NCBI GenBank assembly: GCA_028023455.1
Contig: JAQFVV010000009.1
Location: forward strand, 1,426,001-1,490,000
Direction: 5' to 3'
Source: Epiperipatus broadwayi
Taxonomy: Eukaryota > Animalia > Onychophora
DNA length: 64,000 nt
Shown: piece after piece, positions 678 through 60,912 of the stretch
Position numbering within the stretch: the first letter of the stretch is position 1
Layout: every line of letters begins with the position of its first letter
Translations under genes and position numbers: made by a program
The notes under the pieces: generated by a model
Seen by the model: only the letters and a program-made list of their open reading frames with translations
The model's database searches: none
Told to the model about the DNA's origin: nothing

Positions 678-3600
678 TGCCATGTTCTGAGGGTCCCTAA
701 GACCAGTCAGATAGTGCTAAAAAAAACAAATAATATACTTATACATATATTATATGTAACAATATTTATTAATAAGATTAATAATGATGTAAGATCACAG
801 GGGTAAACATCCAGATTACAAAACTACAATTTATTCTCGAGTGGAAATACCTTATTTCCAAGCGTAAATAGATATGGTTTTATGCTTAGTAATCTTTAGC
901 ACTTGTACTACTATCAGAAAATGTATTTATAATTCTTTTAATGTATAACTAGCTTTAGCAGTTAAAAGTCTTTAATAGACAATAACTATTTCCATATTAA
1001 ATAACCTTTTACAGTTCCTTATTTACACATTTTCTTATGCAAACAATTTATACTATAACTTCAGCATCATAACTGTTATTAATTCCTCAAATGCAGTTTG
1101 ATAAATTTTTACTTATTCACACTTTCTTCAGAAAACCTTTTATTCGAGTATGGATGCTTCTTCTTCCAGCTTAACATTTTTGACAACTCAAGCATTCTGA
1201 ATCTTGTCACTATGGAGGAGTTATCCCCCACATTTTTGTTCAATTTATGTACAAATGTTGTTTAATTTAAATTTACTATTATAGTCTCTCTTTTTTGAAT
1301 TTCTATAGTAATTATAGAGAATATTTATGAGTGAATATAGTCAGTACTTATATATAACATAAATGCTTTTTAATTATACACACAAACATTCCACTCCATC
1401 TCCTACTCTAGAAATAAGAATTACTGTCAGACATAATCTTTAAACTTGACAGGTGGTCTGCATATTCATGGAGTTTTAGGAGTAACTATCTTGGCTTTGC
1501 CTATCTGAGTAGTTATAACTTTTTGCTCTTCCTGCATTATCTTTTTATTTTCCTTCAATTGTTTTTGATCTAGATCTTTATCTGTATTGCTCAATAAAAT
1601 ATCTTTTATGCTACTTTTCCCTCTAACATTGTATGGTAAAGTATTCCTATAACAACAGGGAAAATGATTAATATGTCTCCTCATTTCCTTTTTGTTTTGT
1701 AATTTTCTGTTCTTAATTGCATTAAATATGCTTTATTATATTGGGTATCTATTTATGTTTTAGTAGATCATGCATCCACATATTTCCCAATTATGATTTC
1801 TATCTCTTTTTCTAGTATTTGGTTAGTTTGGTCAAATGAATGCGGCAAAAGTGACACATTAATAAATCTGCTGGAGTCTTTTTTGTGGCTGAACTAGGTG
1901 ACTAATGCTAATTAAACATAGCATTCACCAAAGTTTGCAGTACATTTTTATTTTCATTTCTTCAACATGTTTTTTAAACATTGGACATCTTTTTCCTCAG
2001 TTTTGTTACTCTCAAAATGATAATGTGGATTAAGGGCATGTTTAATCTTTTTATCCTGAAAGTAATGTTTAAATTACATAAAGGCTGTGCCATTATCAAT
2101 CATTTTACTGTTATATAGTTTATATTTGGTTTCTTATAAATCTATTTTTCCACAATTTGTCATCCATCTTTTTCATATTTATAGCTCTGCACTCTTTGAA
2201 ATGATAGACAGCTGCTAAATGTCCTTCTGATTCACAATTTTTACATATTTTATCTTTATATTTGCAGTTATTGCTCAAATGTCTGGATTTACTGCAACAA
2301 TAGTATATTTGCTCTTTTTTCACTCTGCTGGAGGGACAGAATTTTTTTCTTATTTTCTGATTAGTAAATGAAATTTTTTGTAACTATTGAAACAATACAT
2401 ACTCGGACTTTATGTTTAGCATAGCCTCTTGTGTAATGCATGTGTCCATAGCCCATTTATAATTTAAGTCTCCTTTTCTAAAATTCTCATCCACCATGCC
2501 ATATAAAATTTGTTCTAATAATGAATCATTTATTTCAGGACCAAATTTGCAGTCTTTAACTAACTTCCTTAAAGCTACATTATAATCAACATATTTTTTA
2601 TGCATTAATAGCTTCCTATTTCGCAGTCTCAGTTGTGTTACCCATTTCGATATTCCTGGAGTAAATTTTCTTTATTATTTTGATAACTTCTTTATATGAA
2701 AGTTCTTCCTATCATTTGGGATCTGTTAATTTAGTCACATGCTGGATGTTATTTTGGCCTGAAAATAGAGATGTGTTGATATCCTGAAATGCTCAGTTTC
2801 TACTTCATTAATGAACATGTAATATTCTACATGTTCTATGTAATTTTTTCATTAGTCTACATTATTTATATCAAATTTTTGCGATCATAGTATTTAATCC
2901 CACTACTTTCTGTTTAATTCTTCTGCCCAGATTATTTTGTATCATCATCTGCTATTTTTTCTTTTTACCAAGTCTACCAACTGTCGACCTATGCCATTCT
3001 GCTATGTCATGAGACTATCTAAGTCCGGTCAGGTAGTAATAAAAAAAAACATTTATACTTAGTCATATATTATATATAATGATATTTATTAACAAGAATA
3101 ACAAATATGTAAGACCATAAGAGTAAACATCCAGATTATATAACTATAATTCATTCTCAAGTGGGAAGTACTTATTTCCAGGAGTAAATCAAATTTGCAT
3201 ATGTGATTTTAAACTTTGCAATTTTTAGCACTTATATTAGTATCAGGAAAAATATTTATAATCCTTTTAATATATAACTAGATTTAGCAGCTAAAAGTCT
3301 TTAATGGATAATAACTATTTCCATATTAAATAATCTTTTACAGTTCCTCATTTATACATTTTCTTAATGCAAACAATTTATACTTTTAATTTATACTATT
3401 AATTCCTCATGTGCAATTTGGTATTTCTATTTTATTTACATTTCTTCAGAAAACCTTTTATCCAATTATGGGTGCTTCTTCTTCCAGTTTAATATTTTTG
3501 ATGACTCAGGCACTCTCAATCTTGTCACTACTCAGGAGTTATCACCCCACATCTTTGTACAATTTGTACTAATATCCTGATTTACATATAAATGTTGTTT

Positions 3601-5155: not shown

Positions 5156-5930
5156 TTTCATATTATTACTATTTTCGGAATATTCCGTGTGGTAAAATAG
5201 CTAAATAGCTGACATTTCGGTACAATAACAAGTACATTTTTCAAAGCATTCTCTTTCTCAAATCATATGAGTGCATGTGAGATTTAAAATCGTTTTTATC
5301 TTTTTGTTTCTCCTCATACTTAAATTCTATTGGTTGAGAAGTTTTTAATTTTATTTTGTCCTCCAATAGCTGCTTCCAAATGTTGTTAATCTTCTTTAAT
5401 TCACCCTTTTGTTTAATGCTAAGAGAAACTATAGAGATTTTTAAAAGGCCCAAGAGCATAAATGAAAGGTGTGAATTAAAGAAGATTAACAACATTTGGA
5501 AGAAGCTATTGGAGGACAAAATAAAATTTAAAACTTCTCAACCAATAGAATTTAGGTATGAGGAGAAACAAAAAGATAAAAACAATTTTAAATCTCACAC
5601 GCACTCACATGATTTGAGAGGTCATATCGCTAAGAGAAACTATAGAGATTTTTAAAAGGCCCAAGAGCATAAACCAAAGGTGTGAATTAAAGAAGATTAA
5701 CAAAATTTAGAAGAAGCTATTGGAGAACAAAATAAAATTTAAAACTTCTCAACCAATAGAATTTAAGTATGAGGAGAAACAAAAAGATAAAAACGATTTT
5801 AAATCTCACACGCACTCATATGATTTGAGAAAGAGAACCTTTGAAAAAGGTACTTGTTATTGTATCGAAACATCAGCTACTTAGCTATTTTACCACACGG
5901 AATATCCTGAAAATAATAATAATATGAAAT
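5156..5930. mobile_element. Penelope-like element 3' end (pLTR) in inverted plus tandem arrangement
   Basis: 5156-5415 is the reverse complement of ~5660-5930, and ~5418-5620 is tandemly repeated at ~5629-5830. The + strand encodes LRETIEIFKRPKSINERCELKKINNIWKKLL, resembling the C-terminus of PLE GIY-YIG ORFs. Hammerhead-like motif at ~5838-5876 and in the inverted arm. Confidence 0.75.
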
Positions 5931-6417: not shown

Positions 6418-7980
6418 TCAGATCTGATAATCTAAAGATGAAGATTAAACAGACAAGTACTGCATATTATTAATCCAGAAAGAAGCAAAGAATTATAGTA
6501 TTAAAAGGGGCAGAATATTTGTGTGTAAAAACAATAATAATGAGATATGTTAAGAATAAAATCATTCATGTTGTTTTTCAGCTAAAGAGTTTCTTTTTGT
6601 GTCAGATTTGTTTAAAATATTTCGAGCAATAGTGATTTCAAAAGAATGCTAATCAGTGATTTTTTTTTTAATAAATTATTTTTTTATTGATGAATTATAT
6701 ACAAATATTAACATATATACAATAGAATAAAAGTTACATATGCAAAAATATGATAAAAGTACAATATATAATGAAACAAACTAAACAATAAGTTAATCAA
6801 CTTCGATTAAATTTGATCCAAATTTGTATAGCATTTTATACTAGTATGCATAATTTATTTATACATCTAACTGGAGGGGATTTGAACACAGATTTTCAAG
6901 ATTCTTTCAGTCATCTACTCTATCTTATACAACCAATACACATGACCACATATATGTGAAAAAGATAAATGATCTCCAATAGACATATTTTGTGCTGAAC
7001 CAAGACTCATCACTTGGTCCAGATAATCTCCCACACATATAATCAGAGCTCGGTTTATATTAAGATAGCAAATCATCAAACTTTAATGGATAGTCTTCAA
7101 TCTTCTCTACTCTCCGGCTCTTCGGTCATCCATATCACTGAAAATCTGATGATTGATAGGATGGCTGAAGAATTGGATAGTAGAGAAAATTGAAGCTATC
7201 CATTAAAGTTTGAAGATTTGTTATCTTAATATAAACCGAGCACTGATTATATATACGTGTGGTAAATGATGATCCGGACCAATTAATGAGCGCTGATTCA
7301 GCGTGAAATACATGCATTGGAGATCATTTTTCTTTTTCACATCTATGTGGTCATGTTTATCAGTTGTATAAGATAGAGTGGAGACTGAAGGCAGCTTGAA
7401 AGTCTGTATTGAAATCTCTTTAATTACATCTAGCTTCAGTATATATACTATACTTGTACTTAAATATTATACATCTAAAAATTTTTCAAAGGTTAAGCTT
7501 AAGAATTATTTCTGCAATATTATTTATTACCATATACTTAATAGTCCAATTGCTTACATCTGCTGATGAAATATATATCAAAATTCACACTCAAATATTG
7601 CACAACCATGATAACTGAACTGATTTCTTCACAATGCATTTAGGATATTATTCATATATTGATAAGCCCAGTTATTTATTTTCAAGAATGAATGTTTACA
7701 ACAAATGTAAAATGTGAGAATGCACTACTGAGATAGATTGTAGATCTGTAATCTAAAGATGAAGATTAAGCAGTCAAGTATATTATTAATTCAGGCAGCA
7801 GAGAATTCTATTATTAAAAGAGGCAGAATGTTTGTCAAAGCAATAACAATGAAATATTTAATATAAAAAGTTATTCATATTAGTTTTCAACTACAGAATT
7901 TTTTTTTTGTATCAGATTTGTTTAAAGTATTTTGAGCAGTTTTTATTTACAGTGATTTCAAAGAATGCTAGTTTGTGAAT
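6418..7980. repeat. Dispersed direct repeat pair (~240 bp) at 6418-6660 and 7741-7980
   Basis: Shared agatctg...aatctaaagatgaagattaa...tattaaaag(g/a)ggcagaat...tcagatttgtttaaa...agtgatttcaa...gaatgcta; moderately diverged. Confidence 0.7.
6875..7420. mobile_element. Hammerhead repeat family A, head-to-head inverted pair
   Basis: 6875-7135 is the reverse complement of ~7155-7420. Both arms are homologous to the units at 59272-61020 and each holds a decayed hammerhead (+ strand copy at 7278-7321). Confidence 0.8.
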
Positions 7981-8447
7981 TTATATTTCAGATCTTATAC
8001 ATTATTAGCAACAATCCATCCTATATAACTCTAATATCAAAATAATATCCAAATTATTTTTTGACTTTTAGCTAATGGCAATGAAGATTGCTCAATTGCT
8101 TATATTTAAACAACAGTTACTATATTTTTATATATTATTCCAGGTAATAATTTTGAAAATTATAATGCCAGGGGTACCTGTATTGTATAGCTATATAGGT
8201 TTGATACTGGGTTAATGATATAAATTATATTAAAACTGTGGCTATTTTTAAATTTTTTGTAAAATAATGCTTATATCTTAATGTCAGCATTTAATCTATT
8301 CTAGAGTTAATTTTGCAGGAGTGAGTAATATTAATAATATTAGATAACAGTGCCATAAAACATCTTCAAATTAAGGTTTGGCTTTTATCAATGAGAAGCA
8401 TTTGATTGCAAATATGTCAGAAGATCTTCATTGATTTTTTATGCTTA

Positions 8448-11142
8448 TGTAATATATGCAGTTTAAATTAAACATACATACGAAAGTATCTTTATTTTAA
8501 AATATTATTTTATTGTTAAATCTTTAAATTTTGCTACTGATATTCTAATCATAGACATTAGCTTGAAATGCAATCAATTGTAACAAACTAATTAAACAGA
8601 TAACGAAGGAATTTAATTAGCAAAACCCAATCTAATTAAATCCCACCTTAATTTATAAGTTACTCCAGAAAACAAAGAAAACATATAAAAGGGAGGCCAT
8701 TTTTGAAAAGATCAACAGAGTGAGTACAGAGCGTTTTAAGTGAATTAGAGCAGAGCATTAGTTGCAAAGAATAGCATGAGAATTGCGTATTACCCTCATG
8801 GGGAAAGAAGAGAAATTAGATGTAGAAACTATACGTTCAGAATTATCGTGCGAGTATTCGTTATCGTGTGTTCATAGTGTATTTTTCTAATACAGCTCGG
8901 TGGGAATCCGAACTTTGTATAAACTGTAAATCAGTTAGTATCGATCTGTTTTGAGAATTAAACCAACTAGTTCGCAAATTAACTTTTGTGTGCAGTAATT
9001 GAAAAGTCAATATACTGCAATCTGGCGCAGTCAAACCTAAAAACCACAGTGAATAACCAGCTATTAATAAGAAAATGTCAGTTTTCGGACAAAACTCTAT
9101 TGGAGAGTTCGACGTGGAAAACGCGGCCGATTGGCCACTATACCTGTCACAAATCGAAAATTTCTTCATATTAAATGGAATTGTAGACAACAAGCGGAAA
9201 GTAGCCGCCCTCTTATGTTTCTCGGGGAAAAAAATGATTGAAATTGCCAATAAATTATACCAAAATCCCATAGATGAGAATGTACCATTCAAGGAATTAT
9301 CCCAACGGCTAAATGAATTTTTTAGCCCTTGCCCATCCCGGCTATATAGCATGCCTACAATTAAGAAATAGAAAACAACTAAATAGTGAAACAATCAACA
9401 GTATAATTTAGCTCTCAAGGAGCTAGCGAAAGATTGTGTGTACGGTGATTTCGTAGAAGAAATATTATTAGATCAACTGTTATGGGGAATGTTTGACGAC
9501 AGGCTCAGACAACAGCTGTTAACAGAGGCAGACCTAACCTATGAAAGTGCTATAAAGAAAGGAATAACGTTTGAGCTAATTCTAGAACAGGCACAGGCCT
9601 TCAGATCAAAAGAGAAAAGTTATGAGCAAGTTTTCAAAACAGATAAAGCAGAAATACTTTCGTTTCAATGGGAACCCCAGAGAAATTACAGTTTTAAATG
9701 CTACTGCTAAGGGAAAACAGGCCACATAGCTAAAGACTGCAAATGGAAACAAGAAACGTGTTTCAATTGCCGAACTAAGGGCCACCTGGCATGCGCATGC
9801 AGGCAATCGCCAGAAAGGGATGGTCGACAAAGGAAATATAGTCCAGACACAAATGGTAGAGTGTATAGTATTAAATATATATCTACCAAGGGGGAAAGAG
9901 ATAGGACCATTTCGCAAACACAAACAGAGATCATTAAATTACAAAATCAATTTGAAGATGATCGGAAAGACTCTGAACAGAAGCAGTGTAAAGAGCAAGA
10001 TTCTATGAAAGAGCAACTCCAGATTCACATACAGATGATAGATATGTTGGTCGCAGAAAAAACAAAGCTGCAGTCATCCCTAGCACAAAGTCAGCAGGTC
10101 ATAAAACAGAAATCAGATGAACTTGAAGAATTTCAAGTAAGATTGAAGGCTTCTAGACAATGAGTAATAGAACTTGAACAACAAAACTCAGAACTTAGTG
10201 AAAAATTGCAAAGTAAACGCGCAATGTCAGAATTATCCGAACAGGTAGAGAGTTGGCAGCTGTATGAAATGGAACCACAAGAAAAAATGGCCGAAAGTGA
10301 AAAGGAAGAAGACACTTCTGAAGATTTTTTAGAAGAGTGGCAATCTTTAACCAGTGAGCTGCCAGATACAAAAACTGTAGAGCAAGGAAAAAATCAGACT
10401 CTCTTCAAGTGGGAGAAAAAAGCACTCAGGGCGGCAAGGAAAAAGAATTTGCACAAATTTCAAGGTTACATCAGTTAATCATAAAAATAAAGTTTTCTCC
10501 AGTTTGGAAAAAGAAAAAATAAAGCACCGAGGAGTCGCATCATGGGGTTTTCTGGAGTAAGAGGAGGTATTGTAATATATGCAATTTAAATTAAACGTAC
10601 ATACGAAAGTATCTTTATTCTAAAATATTATTTTATTGTTAAATCTTTAAATTTTGCTACTGATATTCTAATCATAGATGTTAGCTTGAAATGCAATCAA
10701 TTGTAACAAACTAATTAAACAGATAATGAAGGAATTTAATTAGAAAAACCCAGTCTAATTAAATCCCACCTTAATTTATAAGTTACTCCAGAAAACAAAG
10801 AAAACATATAAAAGGGAGGCCATTTTTGAAAAGATCAACAGAGTGAGTACAGAGCGTTTTAAGTGAATTAGAGCAGAGCATTAGTTGCAAAGAATAGTGT
10901 GAGAATTGCGTATTACCCTCGTGGGGAAAGAAGAGAAGTTAGACGTAGAAACTATACGTTCAGAATTATCGTGCGAGTATTCGTTATCATGTGTTCATAA
11001 TGTATTTTTCTAACACAGCTCGGCGGGAATCCGAACTTTGTATAAACTGTAAATCAGTTAGTATCGATCTGTTTTGAGAATTAAACCAACTAGTTCGCAA
11101 ATTAACTTTTGTGTGCAGTAATTGAAAAGTCAATATACTGCA
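8448..11142 (+). mobile_element. Young non-autonomous Gypsy LTR element carrying a captured host-gene fragment
   Basis: 572-bp TG...CA LTRs at 8448-9019 and 10571-11142 with about 17 substitutions by eye (~97% identity). Perfect 5-bp TSD GCTTA (8443-8447, 11143-11147). PBS-like tggcgcagtc at 9023 (tRNA-Ser type). PPT ggagtaagaggagg at 10554-10567. Confidence 0.95.
9075..10478 (+). pseudogene. Disrupted chimeric ORF: Gypsy Gag fused in frame to a golgin A2 (GM130)-like coiled-coil fragment
   Basis: Gag N-terminus, capsid-like region and two CCHC knuckles (9075-~9800), then EQLQIHIQMIDMLVAEKTKLQSSLAQSQQVIKQKSDELEEFQVRLKASRQ*VIELE, matching the conserved GM130 block recalled as [56 protein letters not shown]. 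ORFs at 9075, 9438, 9861 and 10206 share one frame. Breaks: compensating indels near 9348 and 9398, stops at 9708 and 10161. Confidence 0.85.
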
Positions 11143-11667
11143 GCTTACATAGATTGTTCTAGAGTAAGGTGATATAGAATGTATTCCAGTTGTTAATGCA
11201 ACTGTTGAATAAAGCTTAGAAGACACATGTAATGCCATTTTGAAATAGTTATTGTTTAATCATCTAGTAATATTTTTTTATTTATTCAAACTATATTACA
11301 TAATTCTTATTGTATTGATGTAGTTTAATGTTTTATGATCTGTTTCTTAAGTTTTTATTGTATTGCCTGGTTTTAGACTTTTTAAAATTATATCATTCTT
11401 TTTTTATATATATGTTTTCTTTGAATTGATTATACTAATATGTTTTTTGAATTATATGATCATAATGTTTATGAATGAAGTTTATATACTACTGGTATTA
11501 AATTTAATAACTATTATGTTAAACATTGTAATGTCATTATTATTGTAAAAAAAATTATTAACATATATATGTACCGTATAAATTATTCTAAAATAAAATT
11601 AAAAATTCTATTTTTTTATATTTATAAAATAAATATATTACAAATGTCTTCTTTTTTTTTTTTTTAG

Positions 11668-12036: not shown

Positions 12037-12699
12037 GTAAGTATCTTTGATCAAATTAATTTTGTTTATATTCTAATTATATTAATATTTTAAAATATTG
12101 GCTTTTACACTCAAAATGAGATACTTTCAATCTGAAATACATATATTATTAAAATAATTTTTAAGTGCTGTGCATGGGTAAGTGCAGATTCTTGAATTCA
12201 TGGATCACTGCTCCAGTTTTGTCATTTTAGGGTGTTCAAACTTTTTATAAACACCAGGCAATAAACTATTCTTGTTTTTTTTTTTTTTCATTACAGTCTT
12301 GTCAGCAATAATTAATCCATTTCCTGTTACTCTACTTATGAATTCTTTATGTAAATATGACTAATCAATTATACAAGAAGATAAGGTCTAATCAGCATCA
12401 CACTAGTCTGTAATTATTGCTTATCTTCATTTTAATTTCATCAGATATACATTAAAACTTAAACACAAAAAAAGCTATGAAATTATAAAATTGCATCAAT
12501 TTTTGCCTGAAATATATTTGGGACTGTTGTTATGCCAAATGGCAATCTATTGCACTTAAATAGCTCAAAAGGTGTGGTGAACATTAAAAATTTTGACAGT
12601 TTTCTGTGACATTGGGATCTGGTGAAAGGCTGAATTTAGATCAAGTTTTTCAAAATAAACTTGTTCGCAGTTACTCTATAGTCACTGCATATATGTATG

Positions 12700-14130
12700 T
12701 TTCCATTGTATTTTGTAACTATGACTATAGATGTAGCCCATTCAGCTATTTCTACAGGTGTCAATACGCTTTTATTGATCAATGACTGAATTTTTCCCTC
12801 TACCTTTGTTCTTTAAGTGAATGCTATCTTTCATGGTTTGCAAATTAAGGGACGTGCATTGTCAATTAGCTCAACCTCTATTGGGCTTCTAGCTATCATA
12901 CCTAACTCATCGGTAAATAGGTCTGGGTTTTTTTTTCTCTCTCTCTTTAGAGAGGAAATTTTTTTTATTACACTAACTTGAATTCCAATTGCTTTAAATC
13001 AGTTCCTGCCTATTATAGGGCTGAATCTCCTTTGTACTATGTATAGCGGCAATCTAATTATTTTATAGCAGTATCTAACTGATGTCTGTACTTACCCCGG
13101 TAAGGTTAATACATTGCCGCTTACATCACATGCTTTTACATTAGTTTTTTTCAAGTTTTAATCTAAACATTCGCTGCTGATAATGCTCTCCAGTTCATCT
13201 CTGATATTATAGATATCCCGAGCCACTATCTATTTCCATTTTCATAATTACTCCGCAAACTTTCAATACAATCATGAATTGTTGTTGCTCCTCCATACCC
13301 CTATTTTTAACAGTAAATTTATTATTGGGTTTACCTTCCCTAATCTTTTGGCTCCGCATTTTCTCTTTGCTACACACGCATGCAATGTGTCCCTTAAAAC
13401 CACCTTTAAAACATTTCTTTCCACTTGCACTCTTTTACTTTATGGTCATTTTTTCTACAGCAATAACATGCCCTTTTCATTCCCTTTTCAAATTTGGGTT
13501 TGCCACTTTCAGTTTTATTTTTAAAAGCTTGAGCTTGCTCACTTATTAGCTCATAAGCTATGCCTTTTTGATTAGCACTGTGGTATTTTAAATCAGTATC
13601 AATTAATAATTGTTCTCACAATCTATCATTGTGCATATCCCAGAGTAATTTATCAAGGAATATCTCTTCTATGCAATCCCCATACCAGCAATCCTTAGTT
13701 AGTTCTCTAAGAGCCGAATTATAATCTTTTATTGATTCCCCTTTAAACTGATTACTATTCCTCAGTTTTAAATTAGCTATATGACGGATGGCCAAGGACT
13801 AAAATATTCTGTTAGTTTTTTAGCTAGCTCATCATATTCTATACTATTAGTGGCAGGGGGATCATAAAACTTATTAACAATCTCTATAACTTTTTCCCCA
13901 GAAAAACACGAAAGTGCTGCAATTTTTTTTTATTGTGTTGAATAAGTAAAAAAGTTTTCTATCTGTGTTGCTTACAATGGCTATTCTACAGCATTCCCCT
14001 GCATCAAACATGCCTATGGCTGTTTGTCCAAATGATAACAATTAAATTGTTTACTATTATTATCCTTTCCTAAGCTAATTATTTCTCTAGCTATGTTCGA
14101 AATAACAACTGTGACAGGTTTTGCTATGTC
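12700..14130 (-). mobile_element. Decayed Gypsy gag-protease-RT relic (intronic, antisense)
   Basis: Minus-strand LRNSNQFKGESIKDYNSALRELTKDCWYGDCIEEIFLDKLLW (homologous to the Gag of the 8448 element), CYCCRKNDH knuckle, protease MEIDSGSGISII and RT start PIEVELIDNARP. Many stops; boundaries approximate. Confidence 0.8.
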
Positions 14131-22072: not shown

Positions 22073-23100
22073 TTTTATATATATATGCACAAACAAAAAC
22101 AACCCAGTGTCTGATTATTAATTATTATCCAAAAAAAAAAAAAAGAAATGAGTCGGGTATTATTTTTACATTTACTATTTAAATAAGATTAGTTTTTATA
22201 TCTACACACGAACAAAAACAATCCAGTTTCTGATTAATTACTGTCAAAAAAAAGAAAAGCAAATTAGTCTGGTTTGAACTTTTTAAATGTAGTATTTGAA
22301 TTACGGTAGTTTTTATATATACACAGTAACAAAAAGAACCCACTTTCTGATTAATTACTGTCCAAAAAAACACAAATTAGTCGGTATCATTTTTCAATTG
22401 AGTATTTCAATGACGGTCTTTTTTATATATATACACTAACAAAAAGAACCCACTTTCTGATTAATTACTGTCCAAAAAAAATGCAAATTAGTTGGGTATC
22501 ATTTGAAAATTTAGTGTGAATTTTTAAATGTTGTGGGTAAATTGAATAATGTAGAATTGCGTATTATTTTCTATTAAAAAAAAACCGTAACTTTATATAT
22601 ACACACAAAGAAAATAAAACTCACTTTTTGATTAATTACTGTCAATACCAAAAAAAAAAAGTTATTCGGGTATCATTTTTAAATTTAGTATTTAAATAAT
22701 ATTACTTTTGATATCTACACACTAACAAAAACCATCCACTTTCTGATTCATTACTGTCCAAAAAAATGCAAAATACTCGAGTATCATTTTTAAATGTAGT
22801 ATTTAAAGAACGGTACTTTTTATATATGCACACTAACAAAAAGAACCCACTTTCTGATTAATTACTGTCAAAAAAAAAAAGCAAATTACTCTAGTATCAT
22901 TTTTAAATTTAGTGTGAATATAGAAATTTTGTGAAAATTCAAAAATGTGTAATTGCGTATTATTTTCTATTTAAAAAATACCGTAACTTTTTATAGATAC
23001 ACACAAACAAAAACAACCCACTTTATGATTAATTATTGTCCAAAAACCGTAAATTATTCGGGTATCATTTTTAAATTTAATGTGAATTTCTAAATTTTGT
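22073..23100. repeat. Tandem array of 8 units (~110-120 bp; units 4 and 7 ~170 bp)
   Basis: Recurrent core acacactaacaaaaagaacccactttctgattaattactgtcc(a)n...gggtatcatttttaaa at ~22073, 22192, 22309, 22418, 22591, 22706, 22817 and 22988. Confidence 0.9.
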
Positions 23101-43812: not shown

Positions 43813-46031
43813 AATTAGAGTAATAAAAACAAGTTTATTTACTTGCTAATAATGTAAAGAATAATAAAATAAAATGATTAAAACCCACTTTAACTTCTTT
43901 AAGCAATTTCAATACTTAACCACATCATAAACTATTCATATGCACAAATATTATATACAAGTCCAATTATCTGTGTGTATCTAATGATTAAAACCCACTT
44001 TAGCTTCTTTAAGCAATTTCAATACTTAACCACATCATAAACTATTCATATGCACAAATATTATATACAAGTCCAATTATCTGTGTGTATCTATTTACTT
44101 TGGTTATAATATACAGACATTCATTTCACTGTCTTCTACAATGATTAGCGCACACATTGTATTTTCTGCTTACAAGGTTGCACAATTGCTGCTCATATAA
44201 TTATATAAATGCTGTTCTGCTGCTGCTAGAAAGTATCCAATTATATTTATGCAGTTCAGAATATGTAGTAGAGCTCATTTAAATATATTAACCTTGCTCA
44301 ATATCAAATCCTTATTTTCAGCTTTATGCTAATTTTCTAGGGTTCTTTTATACCGATAATAATTTTAATGTACTGTCTGTATATATAATACAAGATTTTA
44401 TTAAACTTTATTTACGATAAATATATATATAACACAGAGAATAGTCTATTCCTCCCCCATTCTGGAAAATACTCTTCCTGGGTACAAAAAAATAATCTTG
44501 CAATCTTAATTAATGGTTGTTGTCAAATTCTGGTGGGAGGTAAATCTTCTTCCTCTTGATTATCCATTAGATCTAATGGATCTGGTTATTTCCTCTAGAT
44601 CAGTTTGATTAGCTATGGGCATTCCTTTGTTTTGTAATTCTGAAGAGATGACAGCATGCTTCTTTTTTTTTATTTGAAGTTCACAGTTCATTGGGTAACA
44701 ATTTGAATGTTATCTGCATCTATTATTTCATTCTGCCAAAATCGTAAATAATTAAATGATTGATGTGTGTCTGCAGAATTTTTCCATTATTCAGTTTAAC
44801 TACTCAAATAGAGAGAAGTTCCACAACAGCAGGAAACCATTTTTTTTTAAAAATATCACAACTCCACACTAGATTGTCTATTTTAAAGTTTTCAACATCA
44901 AAATTATTATTCACAATACCTTTTTTATCTGGTACCTTCATTAAGTATGTGCTACACTTACAGTTGCTGTTTTTATTATTGACACAATACAGTCATCATC
45001 TGCATCATTAATCTTATTAACAGATTTTTTTTTTGCTTTTTAATCTGCCTCACCACGATTTAAAGTCCAGACTTAACTGCATTTCACTATTTTTGTCTTT
45101 GTTTATGCAAAAACGAGCTAAATGTTCTTTAATTTTTCAAACATTACATTTCTCCATTTTAAATTTACAAAATTTCTTAACATGGCCTTTTACACTACAT
45201 CAATAACAGATCAAACTTTCCTTTGTTATTTTCCAACTTGTAGCTACAGCTTGTACTTTATTTACAGTAATCAAATTATTCTGCATTTCGACTGAAATCT
45301 GAATTTCTGATGTTTTTCTTTTTTAAAAACATTACTTCCTATGCCACACATTTTTCAAGGGCTATTTTATAATTCAGATTTGGCTCACTCAGCAAAGTTT
45401 TCCTCACAGATCGGCATTGTTTCATGAGTGCATGAAATGCTATATTATAATCTATATACTGCTCATGAGGTAATTTGCCTTATTCTAAAACACAGATGAG
45501 ATACCCATTTCAAAATTTCTCTTCTAACTCTTCATAATGGGATGTTCTCAGGAGTTTTCAGGTCACACAATTGTTTTGCAATTTGTAAAATGTCTTTACC
45601 AGCAAATAACAAAAACATAACTATTTTAAGTCTATCTTCTTTAATTTTATTTATTAGCATATAACACTCAATGTGCTCAACATAAACTTTCCATGATGAT
45701 GTGTTGTACAATATCATAAATACTACTGTTCAGCATTGCCATTATTTATCAACAATAACTTAAACAGGTTCTTATTTCATGAACTAATGACTAAACCATT
45801 CCTTAGTTGACTTACTTCTTCTACTGTCTACTTGTGCCATTCTGCTATATACAGGGATAAAATTTATGTTTACCAGTTGTATTTGCATTTACAATAATTT
45901 AATGAAAACAAACACTAACTAGCGTAATAAAAACAAGTTTATTTACTTGTTAATAATAAAATAAAATGAGTAATAGCACTTTAGCTTCTTTAAGTAATTC
46001 TAATAATTAGCCACATGATAAACTGTTCATA

Positions 46032-47321
46032 AAACATCACATGACCACCACTTCTTATGCTTGTGTATAACTGTTGTTAAAACAGGCAAAACTCACTATA
46101 CGTATTGCCACACACAGCAAGCTAGAGTAATCAATGGATGCCAGAAGGCTTGTGCATAAAACCCCATCTAGTGCCTACTCATCCAATATCCCCAGACTAG
46201 TTTCTGGCTTGTGGCCTTCATCAGTGAGGAGCCTTGGATCTGAGAGCACTGCACCTAGATCTTAGGATCTAATGCAACCCTCCAGCCACCACCTTTTATC
46301 TCCACTTACCTACAAAACTATGAATCTTAAACTGAAATCACCTTAATGTTTTCAATCCAAGCCTATTAGCTTATATAGTCATATGGGTCTGAACTCAGTT
46401 CAGTACCCATACATTTTGGTGTCGTTGGTTCTTTAATAACCATAGCCACCATTATCCTATTAGGAAGGATTGGTTTTAAGCCAATAAACATCACATGACC
46501 ACCACTTCTTATGCTTGTGTATAACTGTTCTTAAAACAAGCAAAACTCACTATACATATTGCCAGACACAGCAAGCTAGAGTAATCAATGGATGCCAGAA
46601 GGCTTGTGCATAAAATCCCCATCTAGTGCCTACTCATCCAATATCCCCAGACTAGTTTCTGGCTTGTGGTCTTTGTCAGTGAGGAGCCTTGGATCTGTGA
46701 GCACTGCACCTAGATCTTAGGATCTAATGCAACCCTCCAGCAGCCATCTTTTATCTCCACTTAACTACAAAACTATGAGTCTTAAACTGAAAACACCTTA
46801 ATGTTTTCAATCCAAGCTCATTGGCTTATATAGTTTGTGGCAATACGTATAATGAGTTTTGCCTAGTTTAACAACAGTTATACACAAGCATAAGAAGTAG
46901 TTGTCATGTGATGTTTATTGGCTTAAAACCAATCCTGTCTAATAGGATAGTGGTGACTATGGTTATTAAAGAACCAAAGAGAGCAAAATGTATGGGTACT
47001 GAACTGAGTTCAGACCCATATGACTATAAGCTAATGGGTTTGGATTGAAAACATTAAGGTGTTTTCAGTTTAAGTCTCACCATTTTGTAGTTAAGTGAAG
47101 ATAAAGGGTTGCTGTTGGAGGGTTGCATTAGATCCTAAGATCTAGGTGCAGTGCTCTCAGATCCAAGACTCCTCACTGACGAAGGCCACAAGCCATAAAC
47201 TAGTCTGGGGATATTAGATGAGTAGGCACTAGGTGGGGATTTTATGCACAAGCCTTCTGGCATCCATTGATTACTCTAGCTTGCTGTGTGTGGTAATACG
47301 TATAGTGAGTTTTGCCGGTTT
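46032..47321. mobile_element. Hammerhead repeat family B insertion: ~1.8 tandem 454-bp units plus ~1.1 inverted unit
   Basis: Unit restarts at 46032 and 46486; inversion at ~46836. 14-bp TSD ataaactgttcata at 46018-46031 and 47322-47335. The sister LTR has a single ataaactattcata (empty site). Confidence 0.92.
46190..46229 (-). ncRNA. Minimal type I hammerhead ribozyme (family B)
   Basis: CCUCA-CUGAUGA-AGGC-CACAA-GCCA-GAAA-CUAG-UC-UGGGG. All core bases present, stem I CCUCA/UGGGG, palindromic ACUAGU stem III, GUC site, A.A mismatch at the base of stem II. Variant copies at ~46645-46684 (-) and 47171-47210 (+). Confidence 0.8.
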
Positions 47322-47986
47322 ATAAACTGTTCATACGCATAAATATTATATACATCCAATTATCTGTGTGTATCCAAACATACAGACTTTCTAATCTTAT
47401 TTCTAGTATCTGTCTTTAATCATTTCACTGACTTCTACAATGATTAGTGTGCACCTTGTATTTTCTGCTTATAAGGTTGCACAATTGCTGCTCATATGAT
47501 TGCATAAATGCTGTTCTGCTGCTGCTAGAATAATATCCAGTTATATTTATGCAGTTCAGAATATATAGCAGTGTTCATTTACATACACTGACCTTGCTCA
47601 ATATCAAATCCAGATTTTCAGCTTTATGCTAATTTTCTAGAGTACATTTATATTGATATTAATTTTAATATACTGTCTCTACATATAATACAAGATTTTA
47701 TTAAACTTTATTTACAATAAATATACATATGATGTACAGAACAGTTGAGAATGAAATCTATATTAATTCAAAATTTCTCCCAGAATATTAGTAATTTCCA
47801 TAATGACAACTTCCATATCTGTAATTTCAGTTATCTTCAATTCAAAAAAATATTTTTAAGTGCATGTTATAATATGGTTCACTGCAATCTGAAAATTTCA
47901 ATACCTACATCAAATCTCGAAACTAAATGTCATAAGATTTAGTGTGATTTCTTAAATTGAAAATAATAAAACTAGTGCAGAATCCG

Positions 47987-52810: not shown

Positions 52811-55799
52811 TCAACCATTATCAATCCACTGCAGGATGAAGGTCTCTCCAAGTTTAATCCATCTTCTCTGATCTTTAGCTTCTCTTCTCCACATCACCCC
52901 TACACATTTTCTTATTTCATCCATCCATCTTACATGTGGTCTCCTTCTGGGTCTTTTACAATCTCTTGGAATCCAGTTTAAAATTTCAATTGTCCATCTA
53001 TTATCATCTCTTCTAGCAATATGTCCAGCCCAACTCCACTTCAATCTTTTAATTTTTTCAATGAGGTCAGTAACACCTGTTTGTTCTCTTACCCATACAT
53101 TGCGTTTTCGATCTCTTCTTGTTACTCCCAACATACATCTCTCCATACTTCTTTGAGTGGTCTGAAGTCTCTGTATTGATCTTCTATTAAGTGTCCAAGT
53201 CTCAGATCCATAAGTAAGAACTGGTAAAACACATTTGTTAAAAACCTTTCTTTTCAAACACATAGGCATATTTCCTTTTAATATCAAGTTATTTCTACCA
53301 AAAGCACTCCAACCAAGTTTAATTCTATGATTAATTTCCTCTATTATGTTTCCATCTGTATTAATAATCTGACCAAGGTATTTGTAACTCTTAACTTCTT
53401 CTAATTCATCATAATCAATCTTTATTTTCATATTTTGAGCAAATCGATTAAACATTACTTTAGTCTTTTTAACATTTATCTTTAGTCCTACTTTCCTACT
53501 TTCATCTGATAACTCCTGCAACATTTCCTGCAGCTCGGAAGCATTATTTGCAAAAACAACTACATCATCTGCGAAATCTAAATGACTTAAATAATCTCCA
53601 TTTACTTTCACTCCTTTAGTTTCCCATTTTAATCCACAAAATACTTCTTGCAGCACTGCTGTAAAAAGTTTTGGAGATATGGAGTCACCTTGTCTTACAC
53701 CTTTCTCAATGTTGACTTTCCCAGTATCATTATGTAATCTAATTGTTGCTGTTGCATTTTTATAAATATTCTTTAAAATATGACAATATCCTGGATCTAT
53801 ACCTTGATGATCCAATGCTTTAATCACTGAAGAAATGTTTATAGAATCAAATGCCTTTTCATAATCTACAAATCCAAAACATAATGACAACTCATATTCA
53901 TTTGTCCTTTCTATAACTTCTCTCAATACTTGAATATGATCTACTGTACTAAAACCACTTTTAAATCCAGCTTGTTCTCTTGGTTGGTGAAAATCCAAGG
54001 TTCTCTGTAGACGAGTTGTAATTATCTTGGTAAAAATTTTATATAAAACTGATAAAAGGCTGATAGGTCTGTAATTTCTAATATCTTCTTTATCACCTTT
54101 TTTAAATATTAATATTATTACTGCATTCTTCCAATCATCCGGTACATCTTTATCATTTAGACATTTGGTATATAACTTTGCTAATATTTTTTTCTGTTTC
54201 TTCACCTGCTTCTTTTAATATATCAATTATAATTCCATCATTACCTGGAGCCTTTCCTTTTTTCATACATTTAATTGCATTTCTCACTTCTTCATTTAAA
54301 ATTCTGGGCAATTCGGAAGATGTAATAGATATAGGAGGTACTTGTTCTTTATTACTATATAATTCTTGATAAAAATCTTCTACCAATTTCATAATGTCAT
54401 CTCTCTTTTTAGTAATAATTCCATCTTTTTTCCTTATTGCAGATATAAATTTCCTACCAATACCAAAATGTTGTTTTACATTCTTAAGACTTTTATTTTC
54501 TTCTACAGCTTTTCTTGCTAGTTCACAGTTATACTTTCTTATATCATTTTCAACTCTTTTCAGCACCATTTTACAAAATTCGAGATATTCAATTCTTTTT
54601 AATGCATCATTCTTGCATATCTTCATATTCCTTCTTTTATTCATAAGTTCTCTAGTCTCAGTAGAAATTTTATTAGTCAATTGCTGCTTTTTTCTACCAG
54701 CTATCTTTGTTGCAGTTTTTAAAAGTGTATCAGTTATTTTCATATTAATTTCATTCAAATCTGAATCATGTTCAAAATCTACTAATACTTGAAACCGATT
54801 TGTAAGTTCTAATTTAAATTCATTAGAATGTTTCTGAAGATTAGGAATATCAACTGTAAATATAGTTTTTCTTAATAATTTTTGTCTCTCTAGTTTTACA
54901 TTAACATGTATCTTACCCCTTACTAATCGATGATCACTTCCTGTGTTAAATTTATTAAGAACATTACAATCTTGAAATATGTATTTCCTGTTTGTCAAAA
55001 TATAATCCGATTCTGCTGTACCTTCATTTGGATGCTTCCATGTCCATTTCATTCTAACATTTTTCTCAAAAAAAGAATTCATAATATAAAGTTTTTCCTT
55101 CTCTGCAAACTCCACAAGTCTATGTCCTCTCTCATTTCTATTACCATAACCAAAATTACCTACAACACTTTCATCTTTCATTTGTTTACCAATTCTAGCA
55201 TTAAAATCTCCCATAACAATTTTAAAATGTTGTTTACTCTGATCAAAAGCCTTTTGTACATCCATATAAAAATCTTCTACTACTTCATCACTGTGAGAAC
55301 TTGTTGGGGCATAAACCTGAATTATCTGCATTTGATATCTGCTATTAAGTTGTATAACTAATCTTGCCACTCTGTCTGATACACCATCAATCTCCACAAT
55401 ATTGTTCTTCCACTTTTTATTTATAATGAATCCTACTCCACTTGTATTTCCAATATTTGTGCCTTTATAATAGAGCATATGTCCACTTTTTAAATCAATT
55501 GTCTCTTCACCTTTTCTTCTAACTTCACAAAGTCCAATAATATCCCATTTAATATAAGAGAGTTCTTCTTCTAATTCTTGCAATCTTCCTTCACTTGAAA
55601 GTGATCTGCAGTTGTAAGTACCTAAATAAAAAGTCGTCATCAAATGGCAGCCTGGGTCCGCCTCCAGGATATTCTTAGCACCCTCCGCCTTCGGCCACCA
55701 ACCGCTGCCTTGGTTGGTGACTTTACAGCCTCCTGGGATTAAGGGCCATGCTTTATTTTTGTCTGTCATAATTGTATAATTGGGAAAAATCTTTATCAT
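52811..55799 (-). CDS. RTE APE endonuclease-reverse transcriptase polyprotein (~995 aa), split by one +1 frameshift
   Basis: APE motifs TYNCRSL, IIGLCEVR, QVYAPT, GDFNARIG, SDHRLV. RT motifs YRPISLL, FVDYEKAFDS, GVRQGDSISP, FADDVV, YKYLG. Removing one T from the T7 run at 54187-54193 joins the two ORFs (GEETEKILAKLY). Confidence 0.92.
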
Positions 55800-59000: not shown

Positions 59001-59277
59001 ATATCAAAGAAACAAATCCTTTAATTACCCACAAAAAGGAATTATAAGAATTTAGATACGTCTCATTAGACTCCAATATAATTAAACACTTAAAATTGTT
59101 TCTACAAAATATTTGTACCCAAGGACAATTGATGCCATTTTTTTAGTATATTTTGTTTTCTTTATCTACAAATTTGATTAAAAGAATTAACATACATTTA
59201 ATTTTTTTTTTCTTATCTTAGACACACAAAAAAAATGTAAAACAAATTTTAAAAAAAATTATTAACAAAAATTAATC

Positions 59278-59321
59278 ACCAATATACATATTTTGTGCTA
59301 AACCAGCACTCATCAGTTGGT
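59278..59321 (-). ncRNA. Minimal type I hammerhead motif (family A), G12 to A variant
   Basis: ACCAA-CUGAUGA-GUGCU-GGUUU-AGCAC-AAAA-UAUGUA-UA-UUGGU. Perfect stems I and II, near-palindromic stem III. Confidence 0.7.
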
Positions 59322-60868
59322 CCAGAATATCATCTCACACATATATATATAATCAGTGCTCAGTTTATATTAAAGATAGCAAATCTTCATACCTTTAATT
59401 GACAGGCTTCAATCCTCTAAAACATCCAACTTTTCAGCCATCCATATCATTGAAAATCTGATGATGAAAACAAATCCCATGTTGATGCTAATATTATTGC
59501 CATGCCCATGTTGACCAGAAGTCACTCTGACCCCTCATGTATAGGACCATATCCATTTAAACACATATAAGAGGGATGAACAGGATACAAGCTTGATATG
59601 TAAATATTTGAAAACCAGGCACTCTTCACAAACCTGGGAGTTTAATTGTAAGTATAGGGGATTTGAACACAGATTTTCAAGCACTCTTCAACTATCCACA
59701 CTATCTCATACAACTGATACACATGACCACATACATGTAGAAAAGATAAATAATCACTAATATACATATTTTGTGGTAAACCATACTCATCAGTTGATCC
59801 AGATTATCAACTCACATATATATATATAATCAGTGCTCAGTTTATATTAAGATAGCAAATCTTCATACTTTAATTGACAGGCTTCAATCCACTCCAACTT
59901 TTCAGCCATCCATATCTTTGAAAATCTGATGATGAGAACTCTCAAATCCCATGCTGATGCTAATATTATTGCCATGCCCATGTTGACCAGATGTCACTCT
60001 GACCCCTCATGTATAGGACCATATCCATTTAAACACATATAAGAGGGATGAACAGGATACAAGCTTGATATGTAAATATTTGAAAACCAGGCACTCTTCA
60101 CAAACCTGGGAGTTTAATTGTAAGTATAGGGGATTTGAACACAGATTTTCAAGCACTCTTCAACTATCCACACTATCTCATACAACTGATACACATGACC
60201 ACATACATGTAGAAAAGATAAATAATCACTAATATACATATTTTGTGGTAAACCATACTCATCAGTTGATCCAGATTATCAACTCACACATATATATATA
60301 TAATCAGTGCTCAGTTTATATTAAGATAGCAAATCTTCATACTTTAATTGACAGGCTTCAATCCACTCCAACTTTTCAGCCATCCATATCTTTGAAAATC
60401 TGATGATGAGAACTCTCAAATCCCATGCTGATGCTAATATTATTGCCATGCCCATGTTGACCTGAAGTCACTCTGACCCCTCATGTATAGAACTGTATCA
60501 ATTTAAATACATATAAGAGGAATGGACATGATACAAGCTTACAATTAAACTCCCAGGTTTGTGAAGAGTGCCTGGTTTTCAAATATTTACATATCAAGCT
60601 TGTATCCTGTTCATTCCTCTTATATGTATTTAAATGGATACAGTCCTATACATGAGGGGTCAGAGTGACTTCAGGTAAACATGGGCATGGCAATAATATT
60701 GGCATCAGCATGGGGTTTGAGTTTTCATCATCATATTTTCAAAGATATGGATGGCTGAAAAGTTGGAGGTTGGAGTGGATTGAAGCTTGTTAATTAAAGT
60801 ATGAAGATTTGCTATCTTAATTTAAACTGAGTACTGATTATATATATGTGTGAGAGATGATAAACTTG

Positions 60869-60912
60869 ATCAACTGATGAGTGCTGGTTTAGCACAAAAT
60901 ACGTGTATTGGT
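60869..60912 (+). ncRNA. Minimal type I hammerhead motif (family A), G12 to A variant
   Basis: AUCAA-CUGAUGA-GUGCU-GGUUU-AGCAC-AAAA-UACGUG-UA-UUGGU. Confidence 0.7.

Follow-up and report, generated by a model that had tools for sequence, protein, structure and literature searches.

A decayed LTR retrotransposon carrying a golgin A2/GM130 coiled-coil fragment in frame with Gag

We analyzed a window of 64,000 nucleotides, i.e., the whole stretch of Epiperipatus broadwayi DNA considered here, in which positions 8448-11142 are occupied by a complete LTR retrotransposon of ~2.7 kb. It combines direct LTRs with TG..CA ends, a short duplication of the target, a primer-binding site (PBS), a polypurine tract (PPT) and a gag with CCHC motifs. 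The features of this element, together with a related element that served as a comparator, are the following (positions are those of the window).

8443-8447, plus strand: left target-site duplication, GCTTA (the same 5-mer stands immediately outside each LTR)
8448-9019, plus strand: 5' LTR, 572 nt, TG...CA ends
9023-9032, plus strand: PBS-like site, TGGCGCAGTC, starting with TGG, 3 nt past the 5' LTR
9075-9848, plus strand: gag, from tblastx to the gag of the related element, Pfam zf-CCHC and reading of the frame
9699-9740 and 9759-9800, plus strand: two CCHC knuckles (CX2CX4HX4C motifs), the first carrying a stop
9849-9920, plus strand: linker of 24 codons that includes the gag-to-GM130 junction; origin uncertain
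9921-10178, plus strand: GM130/GOLGA2-derived segment A, corresponding to spider residues 188-273, with a stop at 10161-10163; from phmmer, a GM130 profile and exon maps
10179-10217, plus strand: GM130-derived segment B, QQNSELSEKLQSK, following a 42-codon deletion and ending at a conserved exon end
10218-10478, plus strand: putative in-frame coding tail, 86 codons and TAA, from the stop-free stretch and GC content
10486-10491 and 10506-10524, plus strand: AATAAA and an A-rich tract, 15 nt apart, between the stop and the PPT
10554-10567, plus strand: PPT, GGAGTAAGAGGAGG, a purine run 3 nt ahead of the 3' LTR
10571-11142, plus strand: 3' LTR, 572 nt, TG...CA ends
11143-11147, plus strand: right target-site duplication, GCTTA
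12490-14040, minus strand: related degraded element (comparator), with gag, a protease motif and the start of a reverse transcriptase (RT)

The two LTRs are 97.0% identical (17 mismatches and zero gaps over 572 nt). The PBS presumably matches the 3' end of tRNA-Ser, and Rfam and tRNA scans were empty. The surrounding genome is AT-rich. Only 1.55 kb separate the LTRs, and the Pfam search of this interior found no protease, RT, RNase H or integrase, the sole match being zf-CCHC (E 5e-4, 20.4 bits versus a cutoff of 20.8). Because of the short interior and the lack of a Pfam pol match, the element is classed as non-autonomous. These results agree with the original prediction for this locus, which described a complete LTR-PBS-PPT-duplication structure with ~97% identical LTRs, and neither protease nor RT after the two zinc knuckles of Gag.

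A single phase extends from the ATG at 9075 to the TAA at 10476 (~465 codons), spanning gag, the GM130 block and the tail. It is broken by a stretch of ~25 codons in another frame at about 9325-9400, i.e., two compensating frameshifts, and by in-frame stops at 9708-9710 (within the first zinc knuckle) and at 10161-10163 (within the GM130 block), which is the same damage, two compensating indels and two stops, that had been proposed for a frame at 9075-10478. The stop-free stretch 9711-10160 (150 codons) contains the second knuckle and the GM130 block together, and thus the in-frame fusion is seen directly. The linker (9849-9920) has no similarity to the neighboring element or to GM130. AlphaFold models one long helix over 9888-10157, with pLDDT above 90. 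The reading path is broken and this copy is dead. About one stop is expected from the 1.5% divergence since insertion, compared to two observed, so that the two stops and two frameshifts are about what decay after insertion predicts. Since the damage is no greater than that, the frame was probably open at insertion.

The related element on the minus strand (about 14040 to 12490) has a gag with ~55% amino-acid identity to that of the chimera, and the tblastx similarity extends up to window position 9848. Past gag it carries a D-S-G protease motif, as the original prediction had it, and RT motifs, in the place where the chimera has a coiled coil; the GM130-like block is absent from this neighbor, the one related element. 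Its RT motifs, on which the Ty3/gypsy-like assignment rests, are weak (RVT_1, E 0.022; Ty3 RT 4ol8, E 0.93). Another element in the same window (872-3366) has kept its LTRs, PBS/PPT and gag, and its zinc knuckles lead straight into integrase-like sequence. The window also contains a near-intact LINE with endonuclease and RT ORFs; the best match of its RT is 59% identical, and the matches are spread across insects and metagenomes.

Judged from sequence similarity far above chance, the stretch 9921-10217, read in the gag frame, is a fragment of golgin A2/GM130. A phmmer search against 1.84 billion proteins gave 160 matches at E<=1e-3, with the best at E 6e-16 and 60% identity, and the top matches ranged from E 6e-16 to 1e-10 with 45-60% identity over about 80 residues. 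The named top matches are GM130 proteins of scorpion, horseshoe crab, spider, tick, millipede, mollusc and vertebrates; those from Centruroides, Tachypleus, Argiope, Nymphon, Ixodes, Pteropus and others bear the label "golgin subfamily A member 2". Among 20 matches that were looked up, nearly all of the named ones are golgin A2 or golgin A conserved domain proteins. In a Pfam scan of ten top matches, GOLGA2L5 was found in all ten and GM130_C in three, and all ten are of GM130 type, while no gag or CCHC protein occurs among the 150 listed matches. A profile built from 47 full-length GM130 proteins gave 103 bits (E 1.5e-31) on the fragment. Segment B includes a 10-mer that is identical in two GM130 proteins, and 24 of 29 nt match the transcript L001.

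The conserved rod block of GM130 is present; however, 5 of the 24 columns with at least 85% conservation are altered in the fragment, compared to a maximum of 4 in any of 33 real GM130 proteins. The nearest known GM130 has 60-66% amino-acid identity and 69% nucleotide identity to the fragment; it should be noted that the comparators come from other phyla, and that a nucleotide identity of about 69% means saturation at synonymous sites. The idea that the capture is much older than the insertion was weakened, the identity of the fragment to the consensus being 0.53, within the range of real GM130 proteins (0.40-0.72).

The captured part is an internal rod fragment, not a golgin, and is devoid of the ends through which GM130 is known to bind. 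No piece of the frame matched GOLGA2L5 (PF15070) or the GM130_C binding motif (PF19046), which in the full-length matches lie downstream of the captured part; the Pfam GM130 models cover only these more C-terminal parts of the protein and not this block. The coiled-coil pieces were also compared by sequence to Pfam and PDB, with no useful result. The N-terminal region of GM130 (..ELE.RNQELA..) is absent upstream of the block, where the zinc knuckles and the linker stand instead. Because GOLGA2L5, GM130_C and, by position, the N-terminal region are missing, Golgi targeting or tethering is not expected.

Three exon boundaries of GM130 fall in this part of the protein (before KAK.., inside KQKA|G and after ..KLNKK), and they are common to spider (L002), scorpion (L005) and mollusc (L004). 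The fragment crosses the middle one without an intron, the codon 10116-10118 being the position of the conserved phase-1 intron. Because it is contiguous across an intron position common to these three genes, the fragment is likely to derive from spliced RNA; the absence of the intron was judged against the gene structures of spider, scorpion and mollusc, not against the GM130 of the host. The fragment also has an internal deletion of 42 codons: QQNSELSEKL stands at offset 13 from RLKASRQ, compared to offset 55, which is fixed in ten near-matches (at most 2 mismatches) that carry the RLKASRQ anchor. This deletion covers the positions of two further spider introns. An exon skip was ruled out as its origin, since both ends are inside exons. 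Detectable homology begins (9921) and stops (10217) no more than about 5 codons away from a conserved exon start and a conserved exon end, respectively, and the captured piece corresponds to four consecutive GM130 exons minus 42 codons.

With corrections, these data support the original interpretation. It had proposed an intronless, mRNA-derived golgin fragment, which the phmmer search it had called for and the uninterrupted reading across the conserved intron position bear out, and the internal deletion that it suspected from the jump between VIELE and QQNSELSEKL is real. The GM130 assignment stands for 9921-10217, where it can be demonstrated, and not for the last 86 codons; as to the proposed Golgi-tether coiled coil, a rod segment lacking GOLGA2L5 and GM130_C is not expected to have tether activity.

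The tail (10218-10475) looks coding. Its GC content is 0.40, and the stretch of 104 codons in which it lies (10164-10475) is open in about 4e-4 of shuffles. Nothing similar to the tail was found in Pfam, PDB or the protein database. Nor does it resemble GM130: when a GM130 origin was tested by profile search, by tblastn in every frame and by collinear Smith-Waterman alignment, the tail did no better than shuffles. The AATAAA and the A-rich tract that follow may be left over from the 3' end of an mRNA, or may be a purine tract that belongs to the element.

A second copy of the chimera was found neither in the 64-kb window nor in the databases searched, and these collections probably do not contain the host genome. 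Protein-database searches with the junction-spanning piece of 150 residues and with the tail gave no match, for which length limits and the absence of the host account. When the junction piece and a gag piece were used to scan viral contigs and, twice, metagenome contigs, no relative turned up.

Taken together, the locus is very probably a dead, non-autonomous, Ty3/gypsy-like copy that was made by LTR-mediated retroposition with a spliced GM130 mRNA. Under this model, element RNA would have been combined with spliced mRNA of the host GM130 (golgin A2), and everything past the second zinc knuckle of Gag (protease, RT, RNase H and integrase) would have been replaced by the internal coiled-coil piece of GM130, followed by the 86-codon coding tail, all in the Gag frame. 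With its LTRs, PBS and PPT retained, the chimeric cDNA could have been integrated by an integrase supplied in trans, leaving the 5-bp duplication, and the ~465-codon frame of Gag and the coiled coil, probably open at that time, would have decayed since. The recombination may have occurred by RT template switching and/or by read-through transcription and splicing, the latter for exon-precise edges. With one copy, the chimeric cDNA as first formed, integrated just once, would leave the same picture as trans-mobilization following the capture. The points that we counted against this explanation are the intron argument drawn from other species, the level of identity (60-66% and 69%), the unexplained tail and the single copy.

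Several alternatives, and variants of the capture itself, have to be weighed against these data. Splicing is a possible, though doubtful, source of the edges of the captured piece: an element located upstream of GM130, or inside the gene, would have given a read-through transcript in which a cryptic donor past gag was joined to a GM130 exon acceptor, and on the 3' side a GM130 donor would have been spliced onward, or else GM130 would have an alternative last exon, the tail, that brings its own stop, AATAAA and poly(A). The proximity of both homology edges to conserved exon ends, a joint coincidence with a chance of about 1 in 20 by a rough estimate, is consistent with this, and so is the tail, which is open in the GM130 frame and ends in TAA, with the AATAAA and the A-rich tract 15 nt on. 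Read-through and splicing, followed by RT recombination, is also the accepted route of oncogene capture by retroviruses, with read-through and splicing as its classical first step (PMC4276931; for the first step, also Swain and Coffin 1992, cited in PMC5131818). However, the exon boundaries come from other species, and GM130 itself becomes less conserved at both edges, so that an end could look exon-precise without being so. In addition, the A-rich tract may belong to the element, and the 42-codon deletion ignores exon borders. That A-rich tract, the AATAAA and the near-intact LINE in the window would fit a nested insertion at the DNA level, in which a LINE-made processed pseudogene of GM130 entered an ordinary LTR element and pol was then deleted. 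We consider this very unlikely: we looked for direct repeats of at least 6 nt around the insert and found none, no pol remnant is present on either side, the GM130 part is internal and is not the known 3' end of GM130, the gag fusion and the tail are both in frame, and an additional deletion of several kb is needed. A coiled coil native to the gag lineage, or a chance or convergent resemblance to GM130, is effectively refuted. Coiled coils do yield spurious matches and the block has no Pfam match; nevertheless, the Pfam GM130 models miss this part of the protein, the E-values of 6e-16 to 1e-10 were obtained among 1.84 billion proteins with only GM130-type proteins in the top ten scanned, gag and CCHC proteins are missing from the 150 listed matches, a second GM130 motif follows collinearly downstream, and the related element is devoid of the block.

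A different question is what became of the chimera after it arose. It is improbable that it founded a family expressing a Gag-golgin fusion, which either aided a non-autonomous spread or was used by the host. The single phase from gag through GM130 to the tail, the rarity among shuffles of an open stretch such as the 104 codons containing the tail, damage within the prediction for post-insertion decay (and thus a frame probably open at insertion) and the known secondary retroposition of such chimeras (PMC5131818) are in line with a family, and the 5 of 24 changed conserved columns hint at evolution outside the constraint on GM130 itself. Conversely, there is one copy in 64 kb and none in the collections, which seem to be without the host genome; Golgi targeting is not expected with GOLGA2L5, GM130_C and the N-terminal region missing; this copy is dead; and each in-frame junction has a chance of 1 in 3. 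Slightly less probable still is that selection kept the frame of Gag, GM130 and the tail in a non-autonomous lineage or a host gene, with a dimerizing coiled coil that alters Gag assembly.

Capture by LTR-mediated retroposition, the preferred explanation, has known parallels. In acutely transforming, replication-defective retroviruses, Gag-onc fusions carry host mRNA-derived sequence that replaces pol/env in frame with Gag, and these viruses are dependent on a helper. LTR-mediated retrocopies have been found in Drosophila, mosquito, zebrafish, chicken and mammals (Tan et al. 2016, Genome Res, PMC5131818); they are partial, replace a part of the internal ORF in the sense of the element, are co-transcribed from the LTR, are sometimes in frame and can be re-mobilized as non-autonomous elements. 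The present element resembles them in that a partial, intron-less copy of a host mRNA replaces the internal ORF and both LTRs are kept. However, the copies described there are recent and differ from their parent genes by no more than a few percent, and both the parent and the microsimilarity at the junctions have been identified, whereas here the identity to the nearest known GM130 is 60-66% and it is specifically Gag, past its zinc knuckles, that is fused. The named golgin matches by themselves point to a chelicerate-like or other non-insect invertebrate as the probable host. The maize element Bs1 (Elrouby and Bureau 2001, 2010), as outlined in PMC5131818 and PMC7264820, is a pol-less LTR retrotransposon with transduced fragments of host genes, a chimeric ORF, a low copy number and shared switch points. 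Both are LTR retrotransposons without pol that carry host gene sequence in a chimeric ORF; according to those accounts, the plant element involves three host genes and demonstrated expression, compared to one identified host gene and a tail here. Compared to the Gag-onc viruses, this is an endogenous invertebrate retrotransposon and not an infectious vertebrate retrovirus, and the captured piece is a structural coiled coil without a known growth function. Internally deleted non-autonomous LTR elements (e.g., 872-3366) similarly keep the LTRs, PBS/PPT and gag and miss the enzymatic core; they are simple deletions, whereas here foreign host coding sequence fills the gap. We regard the element as a new instance of LTR-mediated retroposition comparable to Gag-onc capture, by a mechanism already described in animals (PMC5131818).

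The value of this single decayed copy lies in its being a documented case, from which a search of the whole genome can start. In this well-delimited invertebrate case, an LTR retrotransposon has transduced coding sequence of its host and joined it in frame to Gag, and it is the retrotransposon counterpart of the Gag-onc viruses and of maize Bs1. If the frame was indeed kept by selection, the chimera could co-assemble with helper particles and parasitize them, or poison them, like Gag-derived restriction factors, and the exon-precise edges would mean that host exons entered by splicing and not by RT template jumps. Such edges, if true in the host genome, would bear on whether the splicing of read-through transcripts plays a part in capture by retrotransposons, as it does in that by retroviruses. 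Chimeras of this type are one way in which exons are shuffled and new Gag-fusion proteins arise.

The observation of the element was confirmed, and the capture of a GM130 (golgin A2, GOLGA2) fragment by an LTR retrotransposon is supported. The element, delimited by reading 8200-11400, occupies positions 8448-11142 of the plus strand, 2695 bp in total with an interior of just 1551 bp, and the LTR-PBS-PPT-TSD structure with ~97% identical LTRs that had been described for it is present:

8448-9019, plus strand: 5' LTR, 572 nt, starting with TG and ending with CA (repeat finding and global alignment)
10571-11142, plus strand: 3' LTR, 572 nt, starting with TG and ending with CA (repeat finding and global alignment)
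8443-8447 and 11143-11147: target-site duplication GCTTA, the pentamer directly flanking both LTRs
9023-9032, plus strand: PBS-like TGGCGCAGTC, 3 bases 3' of the 5' LTR
10554-10567, plus strand: purine tract GGAGTAAGAGGAGG, 3 bases 5' of the 3' LTR

The PBS-like sequence probably resembles the tRNA-Ser PBS found in 17.6/297 elements. Global alignment of the two LTRs yielded 17 mismatches and no gaps, i.e., 97.0% identity. Transitions account for 16 of the 17 differences, and 10 are CpG-linked (6 where one copy has a CpG, and 4 in the two CA/TG doublets 8556-8557 and 8775-8776). This points to methylation-driven CpG decay, in which case the LTR divergence would overestimate the age of the element.

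The only Pfam match in the interior is zf-CCHC, in agreement with the original observation that neither protease nor reverse transcriptase (RT) follows the Gag zinc knuckles. A related element nearby (minus strand) served as the comparator. Its gag, at ~14040-13324, has roughly 55% amino-acid identity to that of the chimera, and the similarity stops at 9848 (tblastx of the element versus the window). Past that point, the frame of the neighbour runs on into MEIDSGSGY near 13230, a retropepsin-type D-S-G motif, in line with the protease that had been claimed at this position of the relative, and then into RT-like motifs (LDLNSAFHQIP and PFGITTVPNIFQ) down to about 12490. This RT matches the databases weakly, owing to the shattered state of the copy: a piece of 49 residues matches Pfam RVT_1 with E 0.022, and the Ty3 RT 4ol8 matches at a collinear position with E 0.93. 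Judged from this alignment, the chimera is without the protease motif and RT that follow gag in the related element. The neighbour as a whole (12490-14040), a degraded relative of the chimera's parent, comprises gag, the protease motif and the start of RT, carries many frameshifts and breaks off near 12490; no pair of LTRs was detected around it. The gag frame changes after FSP at the same place in both elements.

What the chimera has instead is a GM130 block, the motif of which had been correctly recognized. When 1.84 billion representative proteins were searched by phmmer with the translation of 9861-10160, 160 matches reached E ≤ 1e-3 (best 6e-16, 60% identity), mostly proteins of 800-1000 residues aligned at about residues 140-270. 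Top matches in Centruroides, Tachypleus, Argiope, Nymphon, Lingula, Ixodes and Pteropus are named golgin subfamily A member 2, and related entries come from Haemaphysalis, the millipede Chamberlinius, Elysia, a frog and a fish. Pfam GOLGA2L5 was found in 10/10 top matches scanned and GM130_C also in 3/10, both downstream of the aligned part; the block itself has no Pfam match because the GM130 models of Pfam begin further downstream. Gag-like sequence and CCHC motifs are absent from all 150 phmmer matches listed. A profile built from 47 full-length matches scored 103 bits (E 1.5e-31) against the piece, with window residues 16-100 corresponding to profile positions 216-300, and tblastn of the 47 proteins against the whole window recovered this locus alone (match starts about 9600-10200).

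The fragment carries an internal deletion, as suspected from the jump between VIELE and QQNSELSEKL. In GM130 proteins, QQNSELSEKL and its close variants begin exactly 55 residues downstream of the first residue of RLKASRQ in 10/10 anchored near-matches (at most 2 mismatches; 7 other near-matches lack the RLKASRQ anchor, and their offset is not measurable). The window has this 10-mer, in a form shared with two GM130s, 13 residues after the start of the RLKASRQ equivalent; therefore, by this alignment, 42 codons are absent between 10178 and 10179. At the nucleotide level, 24/29 bases of the second motif match the closest GM130 transcript (L001). The flanks, ELE/QQ in the window versus LER and EEL(K/Q)QQ in GM130s, suggest that the deletion arose by slippage on a short repeat.

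Mapping GM130 proteins onto the genes of the spider Argiope bruennichi (L002), the scorpion Centruroides sculpturatus (L005) and the mollusc Elysia chlorotica (L004), we found three common exon boundaries: directly before KA(K/R) (spider residues 187/188), in phase 1 within the codon after KQKA (spider G254), and after KLNKK (spider 328/329). These rod-region intron positions, one of them phase-1, are thus conserved between chelicerates and mollusc. Two additional spider boundaries (290/291 and 306/307) fall in the region of the 42-codon deletion, and Elysia has an extra intron within the QLQVHIQ motif, between QLQ and VHIQ. Single-exon gene fragments from other genomes (P0007, P0010 = L003 and P0015) end at the same KQKAG border, followed by intron sequence. 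With chelicerate and mollusc genes as proxy for the host's own, the three introns are likely to be present in host GM130 as well. The window reads KQKSDELEEF uninterrupted across the middle boundary (codon 10116-10118). Because it crosses a conserved intron position without an intron, the fragment most likely derives from spliced RNA, as judged by the spider, scorpion and mollusc genes; the claim of an intronless, mRNA-derived fragment is supported to this extent.

The conserved exon start corresponds to codon 9921-9923, counting back 31 residues from QLQ.H, and clear GM130 similarity starts 5 codons later. Upstream of the exon start, strongly conserved GM130 residues are absent from the window, and zinc knuckles and a linker are found there instead. 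On the 3' side, the similarity runs out at SEKLQSK (10217), opposite the exon end KLNKK. Each edge is therefore at most about 5 codons from a conserved exon border; the probability that both are so by chance is, as a rough estimate, ~1 in 20. This proximity raises the possibility that one or both junctions arose when a read-through transcript was spliced, which is how the capture of oncogenes by retroviruses classically begins (PMC4276931; also Swain and Coffin, cited by PMC5131818). The alternative is that the junctions were made by template switches guided by microsimilarity.

A single phase extends from ATG 9075 through TAA 10476. Along the path set by homology to the neighbour's gag, this frame has four breaks, the same two compensating frameshifts and two stops as originally counted:

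about 9325-9400, plus strand: out-of-frame stretch of ~25 codons between the two compensating frameshifts
9708-9710, plus strand: stop within the first CCHC knuckle (9699-9740)
10161-10163, plus strand: second stop on the homology-defined path

The remaining nominal-phase stops (9369, 9384-9389) fall within the shifted stretch. At 1.5% divergence per copy (half the LTR difference), about one stop is expected from decay versus two observed, and so the frame was plausibly open when this copy inserted.

The in-frame tail (10218-10475) looks coding, since only about 4e-4 of shuffles leave open the stop-free stretch containing it (10164-10475, 104 codons), the two other frames have 6 and 8 stops, and the GC content of the tail (0.40) is close to that of gag (0.395; flanks, 0.21-0.28). 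Single-sequence AlphaFold predicted helices with moderate confidence. The tail is no closer to the collinear part of GM130 than shuffled versions are, with a profile score of -1.2 (shuffles: mean -1.3, maximum 5.4) and 27/100 shuffles reaching the observed mean Smith-Waterman score. Pfam and PDB gave no matches, nor did a 5.8-billion-cluster database within the length limits of that search. The tail may come from any of three sources: host GM130, as an alternative terminal exon that includes the 3' end of the gene; a second host mRNA, again as its 3' end; or the 3' part of the element's own pol. AATAAA (10486-10491) follows the TAA, and an A-rich tract (10506-10524) begins 15 nt later, between the stop and the PPT; together, they may be the relic 3' end of a captured mRNA.

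For the region 9711-10160, AlphaFold predicted one unbroken helix (~9888-10157, pLDDT above 90). GM130 binds p115 through its N-terminus and GRASP65 through its C-terminus. The captured piece comes from within the rod and has neither the N-terminal region nor the GOLGA2L5 and GM130_C domains; because both binding ends are absent, it would not be expected to tether or target anything to the Golgi, and the proposed Golgi-tether role is unlikely. The segment would be, at most, a dimerising coiled coil attached to Gag. Its identity to the GM130 consensus (0.53) is within the natural range. At 24 columns ≥85% conserved in 33 GM130s, 5 are altered, including one invariant and one 97% conserved, versus a maximum of 4 and a median of 0 among the 33 real proteins; this is only a hint that the fragment evolved free of GM130's constraints.

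No second copy of the chimera was found in the 64-kb window (tblastx) or in the protein libraries and contig collections. The window's own ORFs are likewise absent from those libraries; this absence of copies says little about the proposed functional family because the host genome is evidently outside the collections searched. The window contains other repeats:

872-3366, minus strand: short LTR-bounded element with 166-nt terminal repeats (87% identity); gag with two CCHC knuckles, then directly integrase-core-like sequence (NGTAF..HYHFESN), a plain internal-deletion derivative
44234-47745, minus strand: short element whose 212-nt terminal repeats (87% identity) are separated by 3.3 kb, with degraded gag-like sequence (45100-45705) and an internal 222-nt duplication (46158-46834)
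52811-55799, minus strand: non-LTR retrotransposon, nearly intact; its two long ORFs overlap and are of 548 residues (AP-endonuclease domain) and 464 residues (RT; nearest database relatives 59% identical, insects and metagenomes)
59273-60540: tandem array, period 472 bp, 2.7 copies, 95% matches
22074-23079: tandem array, period about 110 bp
5418-5830: tandem array, period 211 bp
43873-44093: tandem array, period 110 bp
7202-7382 and 60793-60973: dispersed repeat, 181 nt

The LTR-mediated retrocopies described in Drosophila, mosquito, zebrafish, chicken and mammals have exactly the architecture of the present chimera: an incomplete retrocopy takes the place of part of an LTR element's internal ORF, and both LTRs are retained (Tan et al. 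2016; PMC5131818). Microsimilarity at switch points and frequent in-frame ORFs were reported there, as were co-transcription from the LTR and secondary retroposition as non-autonomous elements (PMC5131818). Maize Bs1 is the plant classic of host-gene transduction by an LTR element (PMC7264820), and replication-defective Gag-onc retroviruses are the viral analogue. This type of capture is already known, and the present chimera adds another case, its own features being a fusion point immediately behind the Gag knuckles, GM130 as the donor, edges at exon borders and a coding-looking tail.
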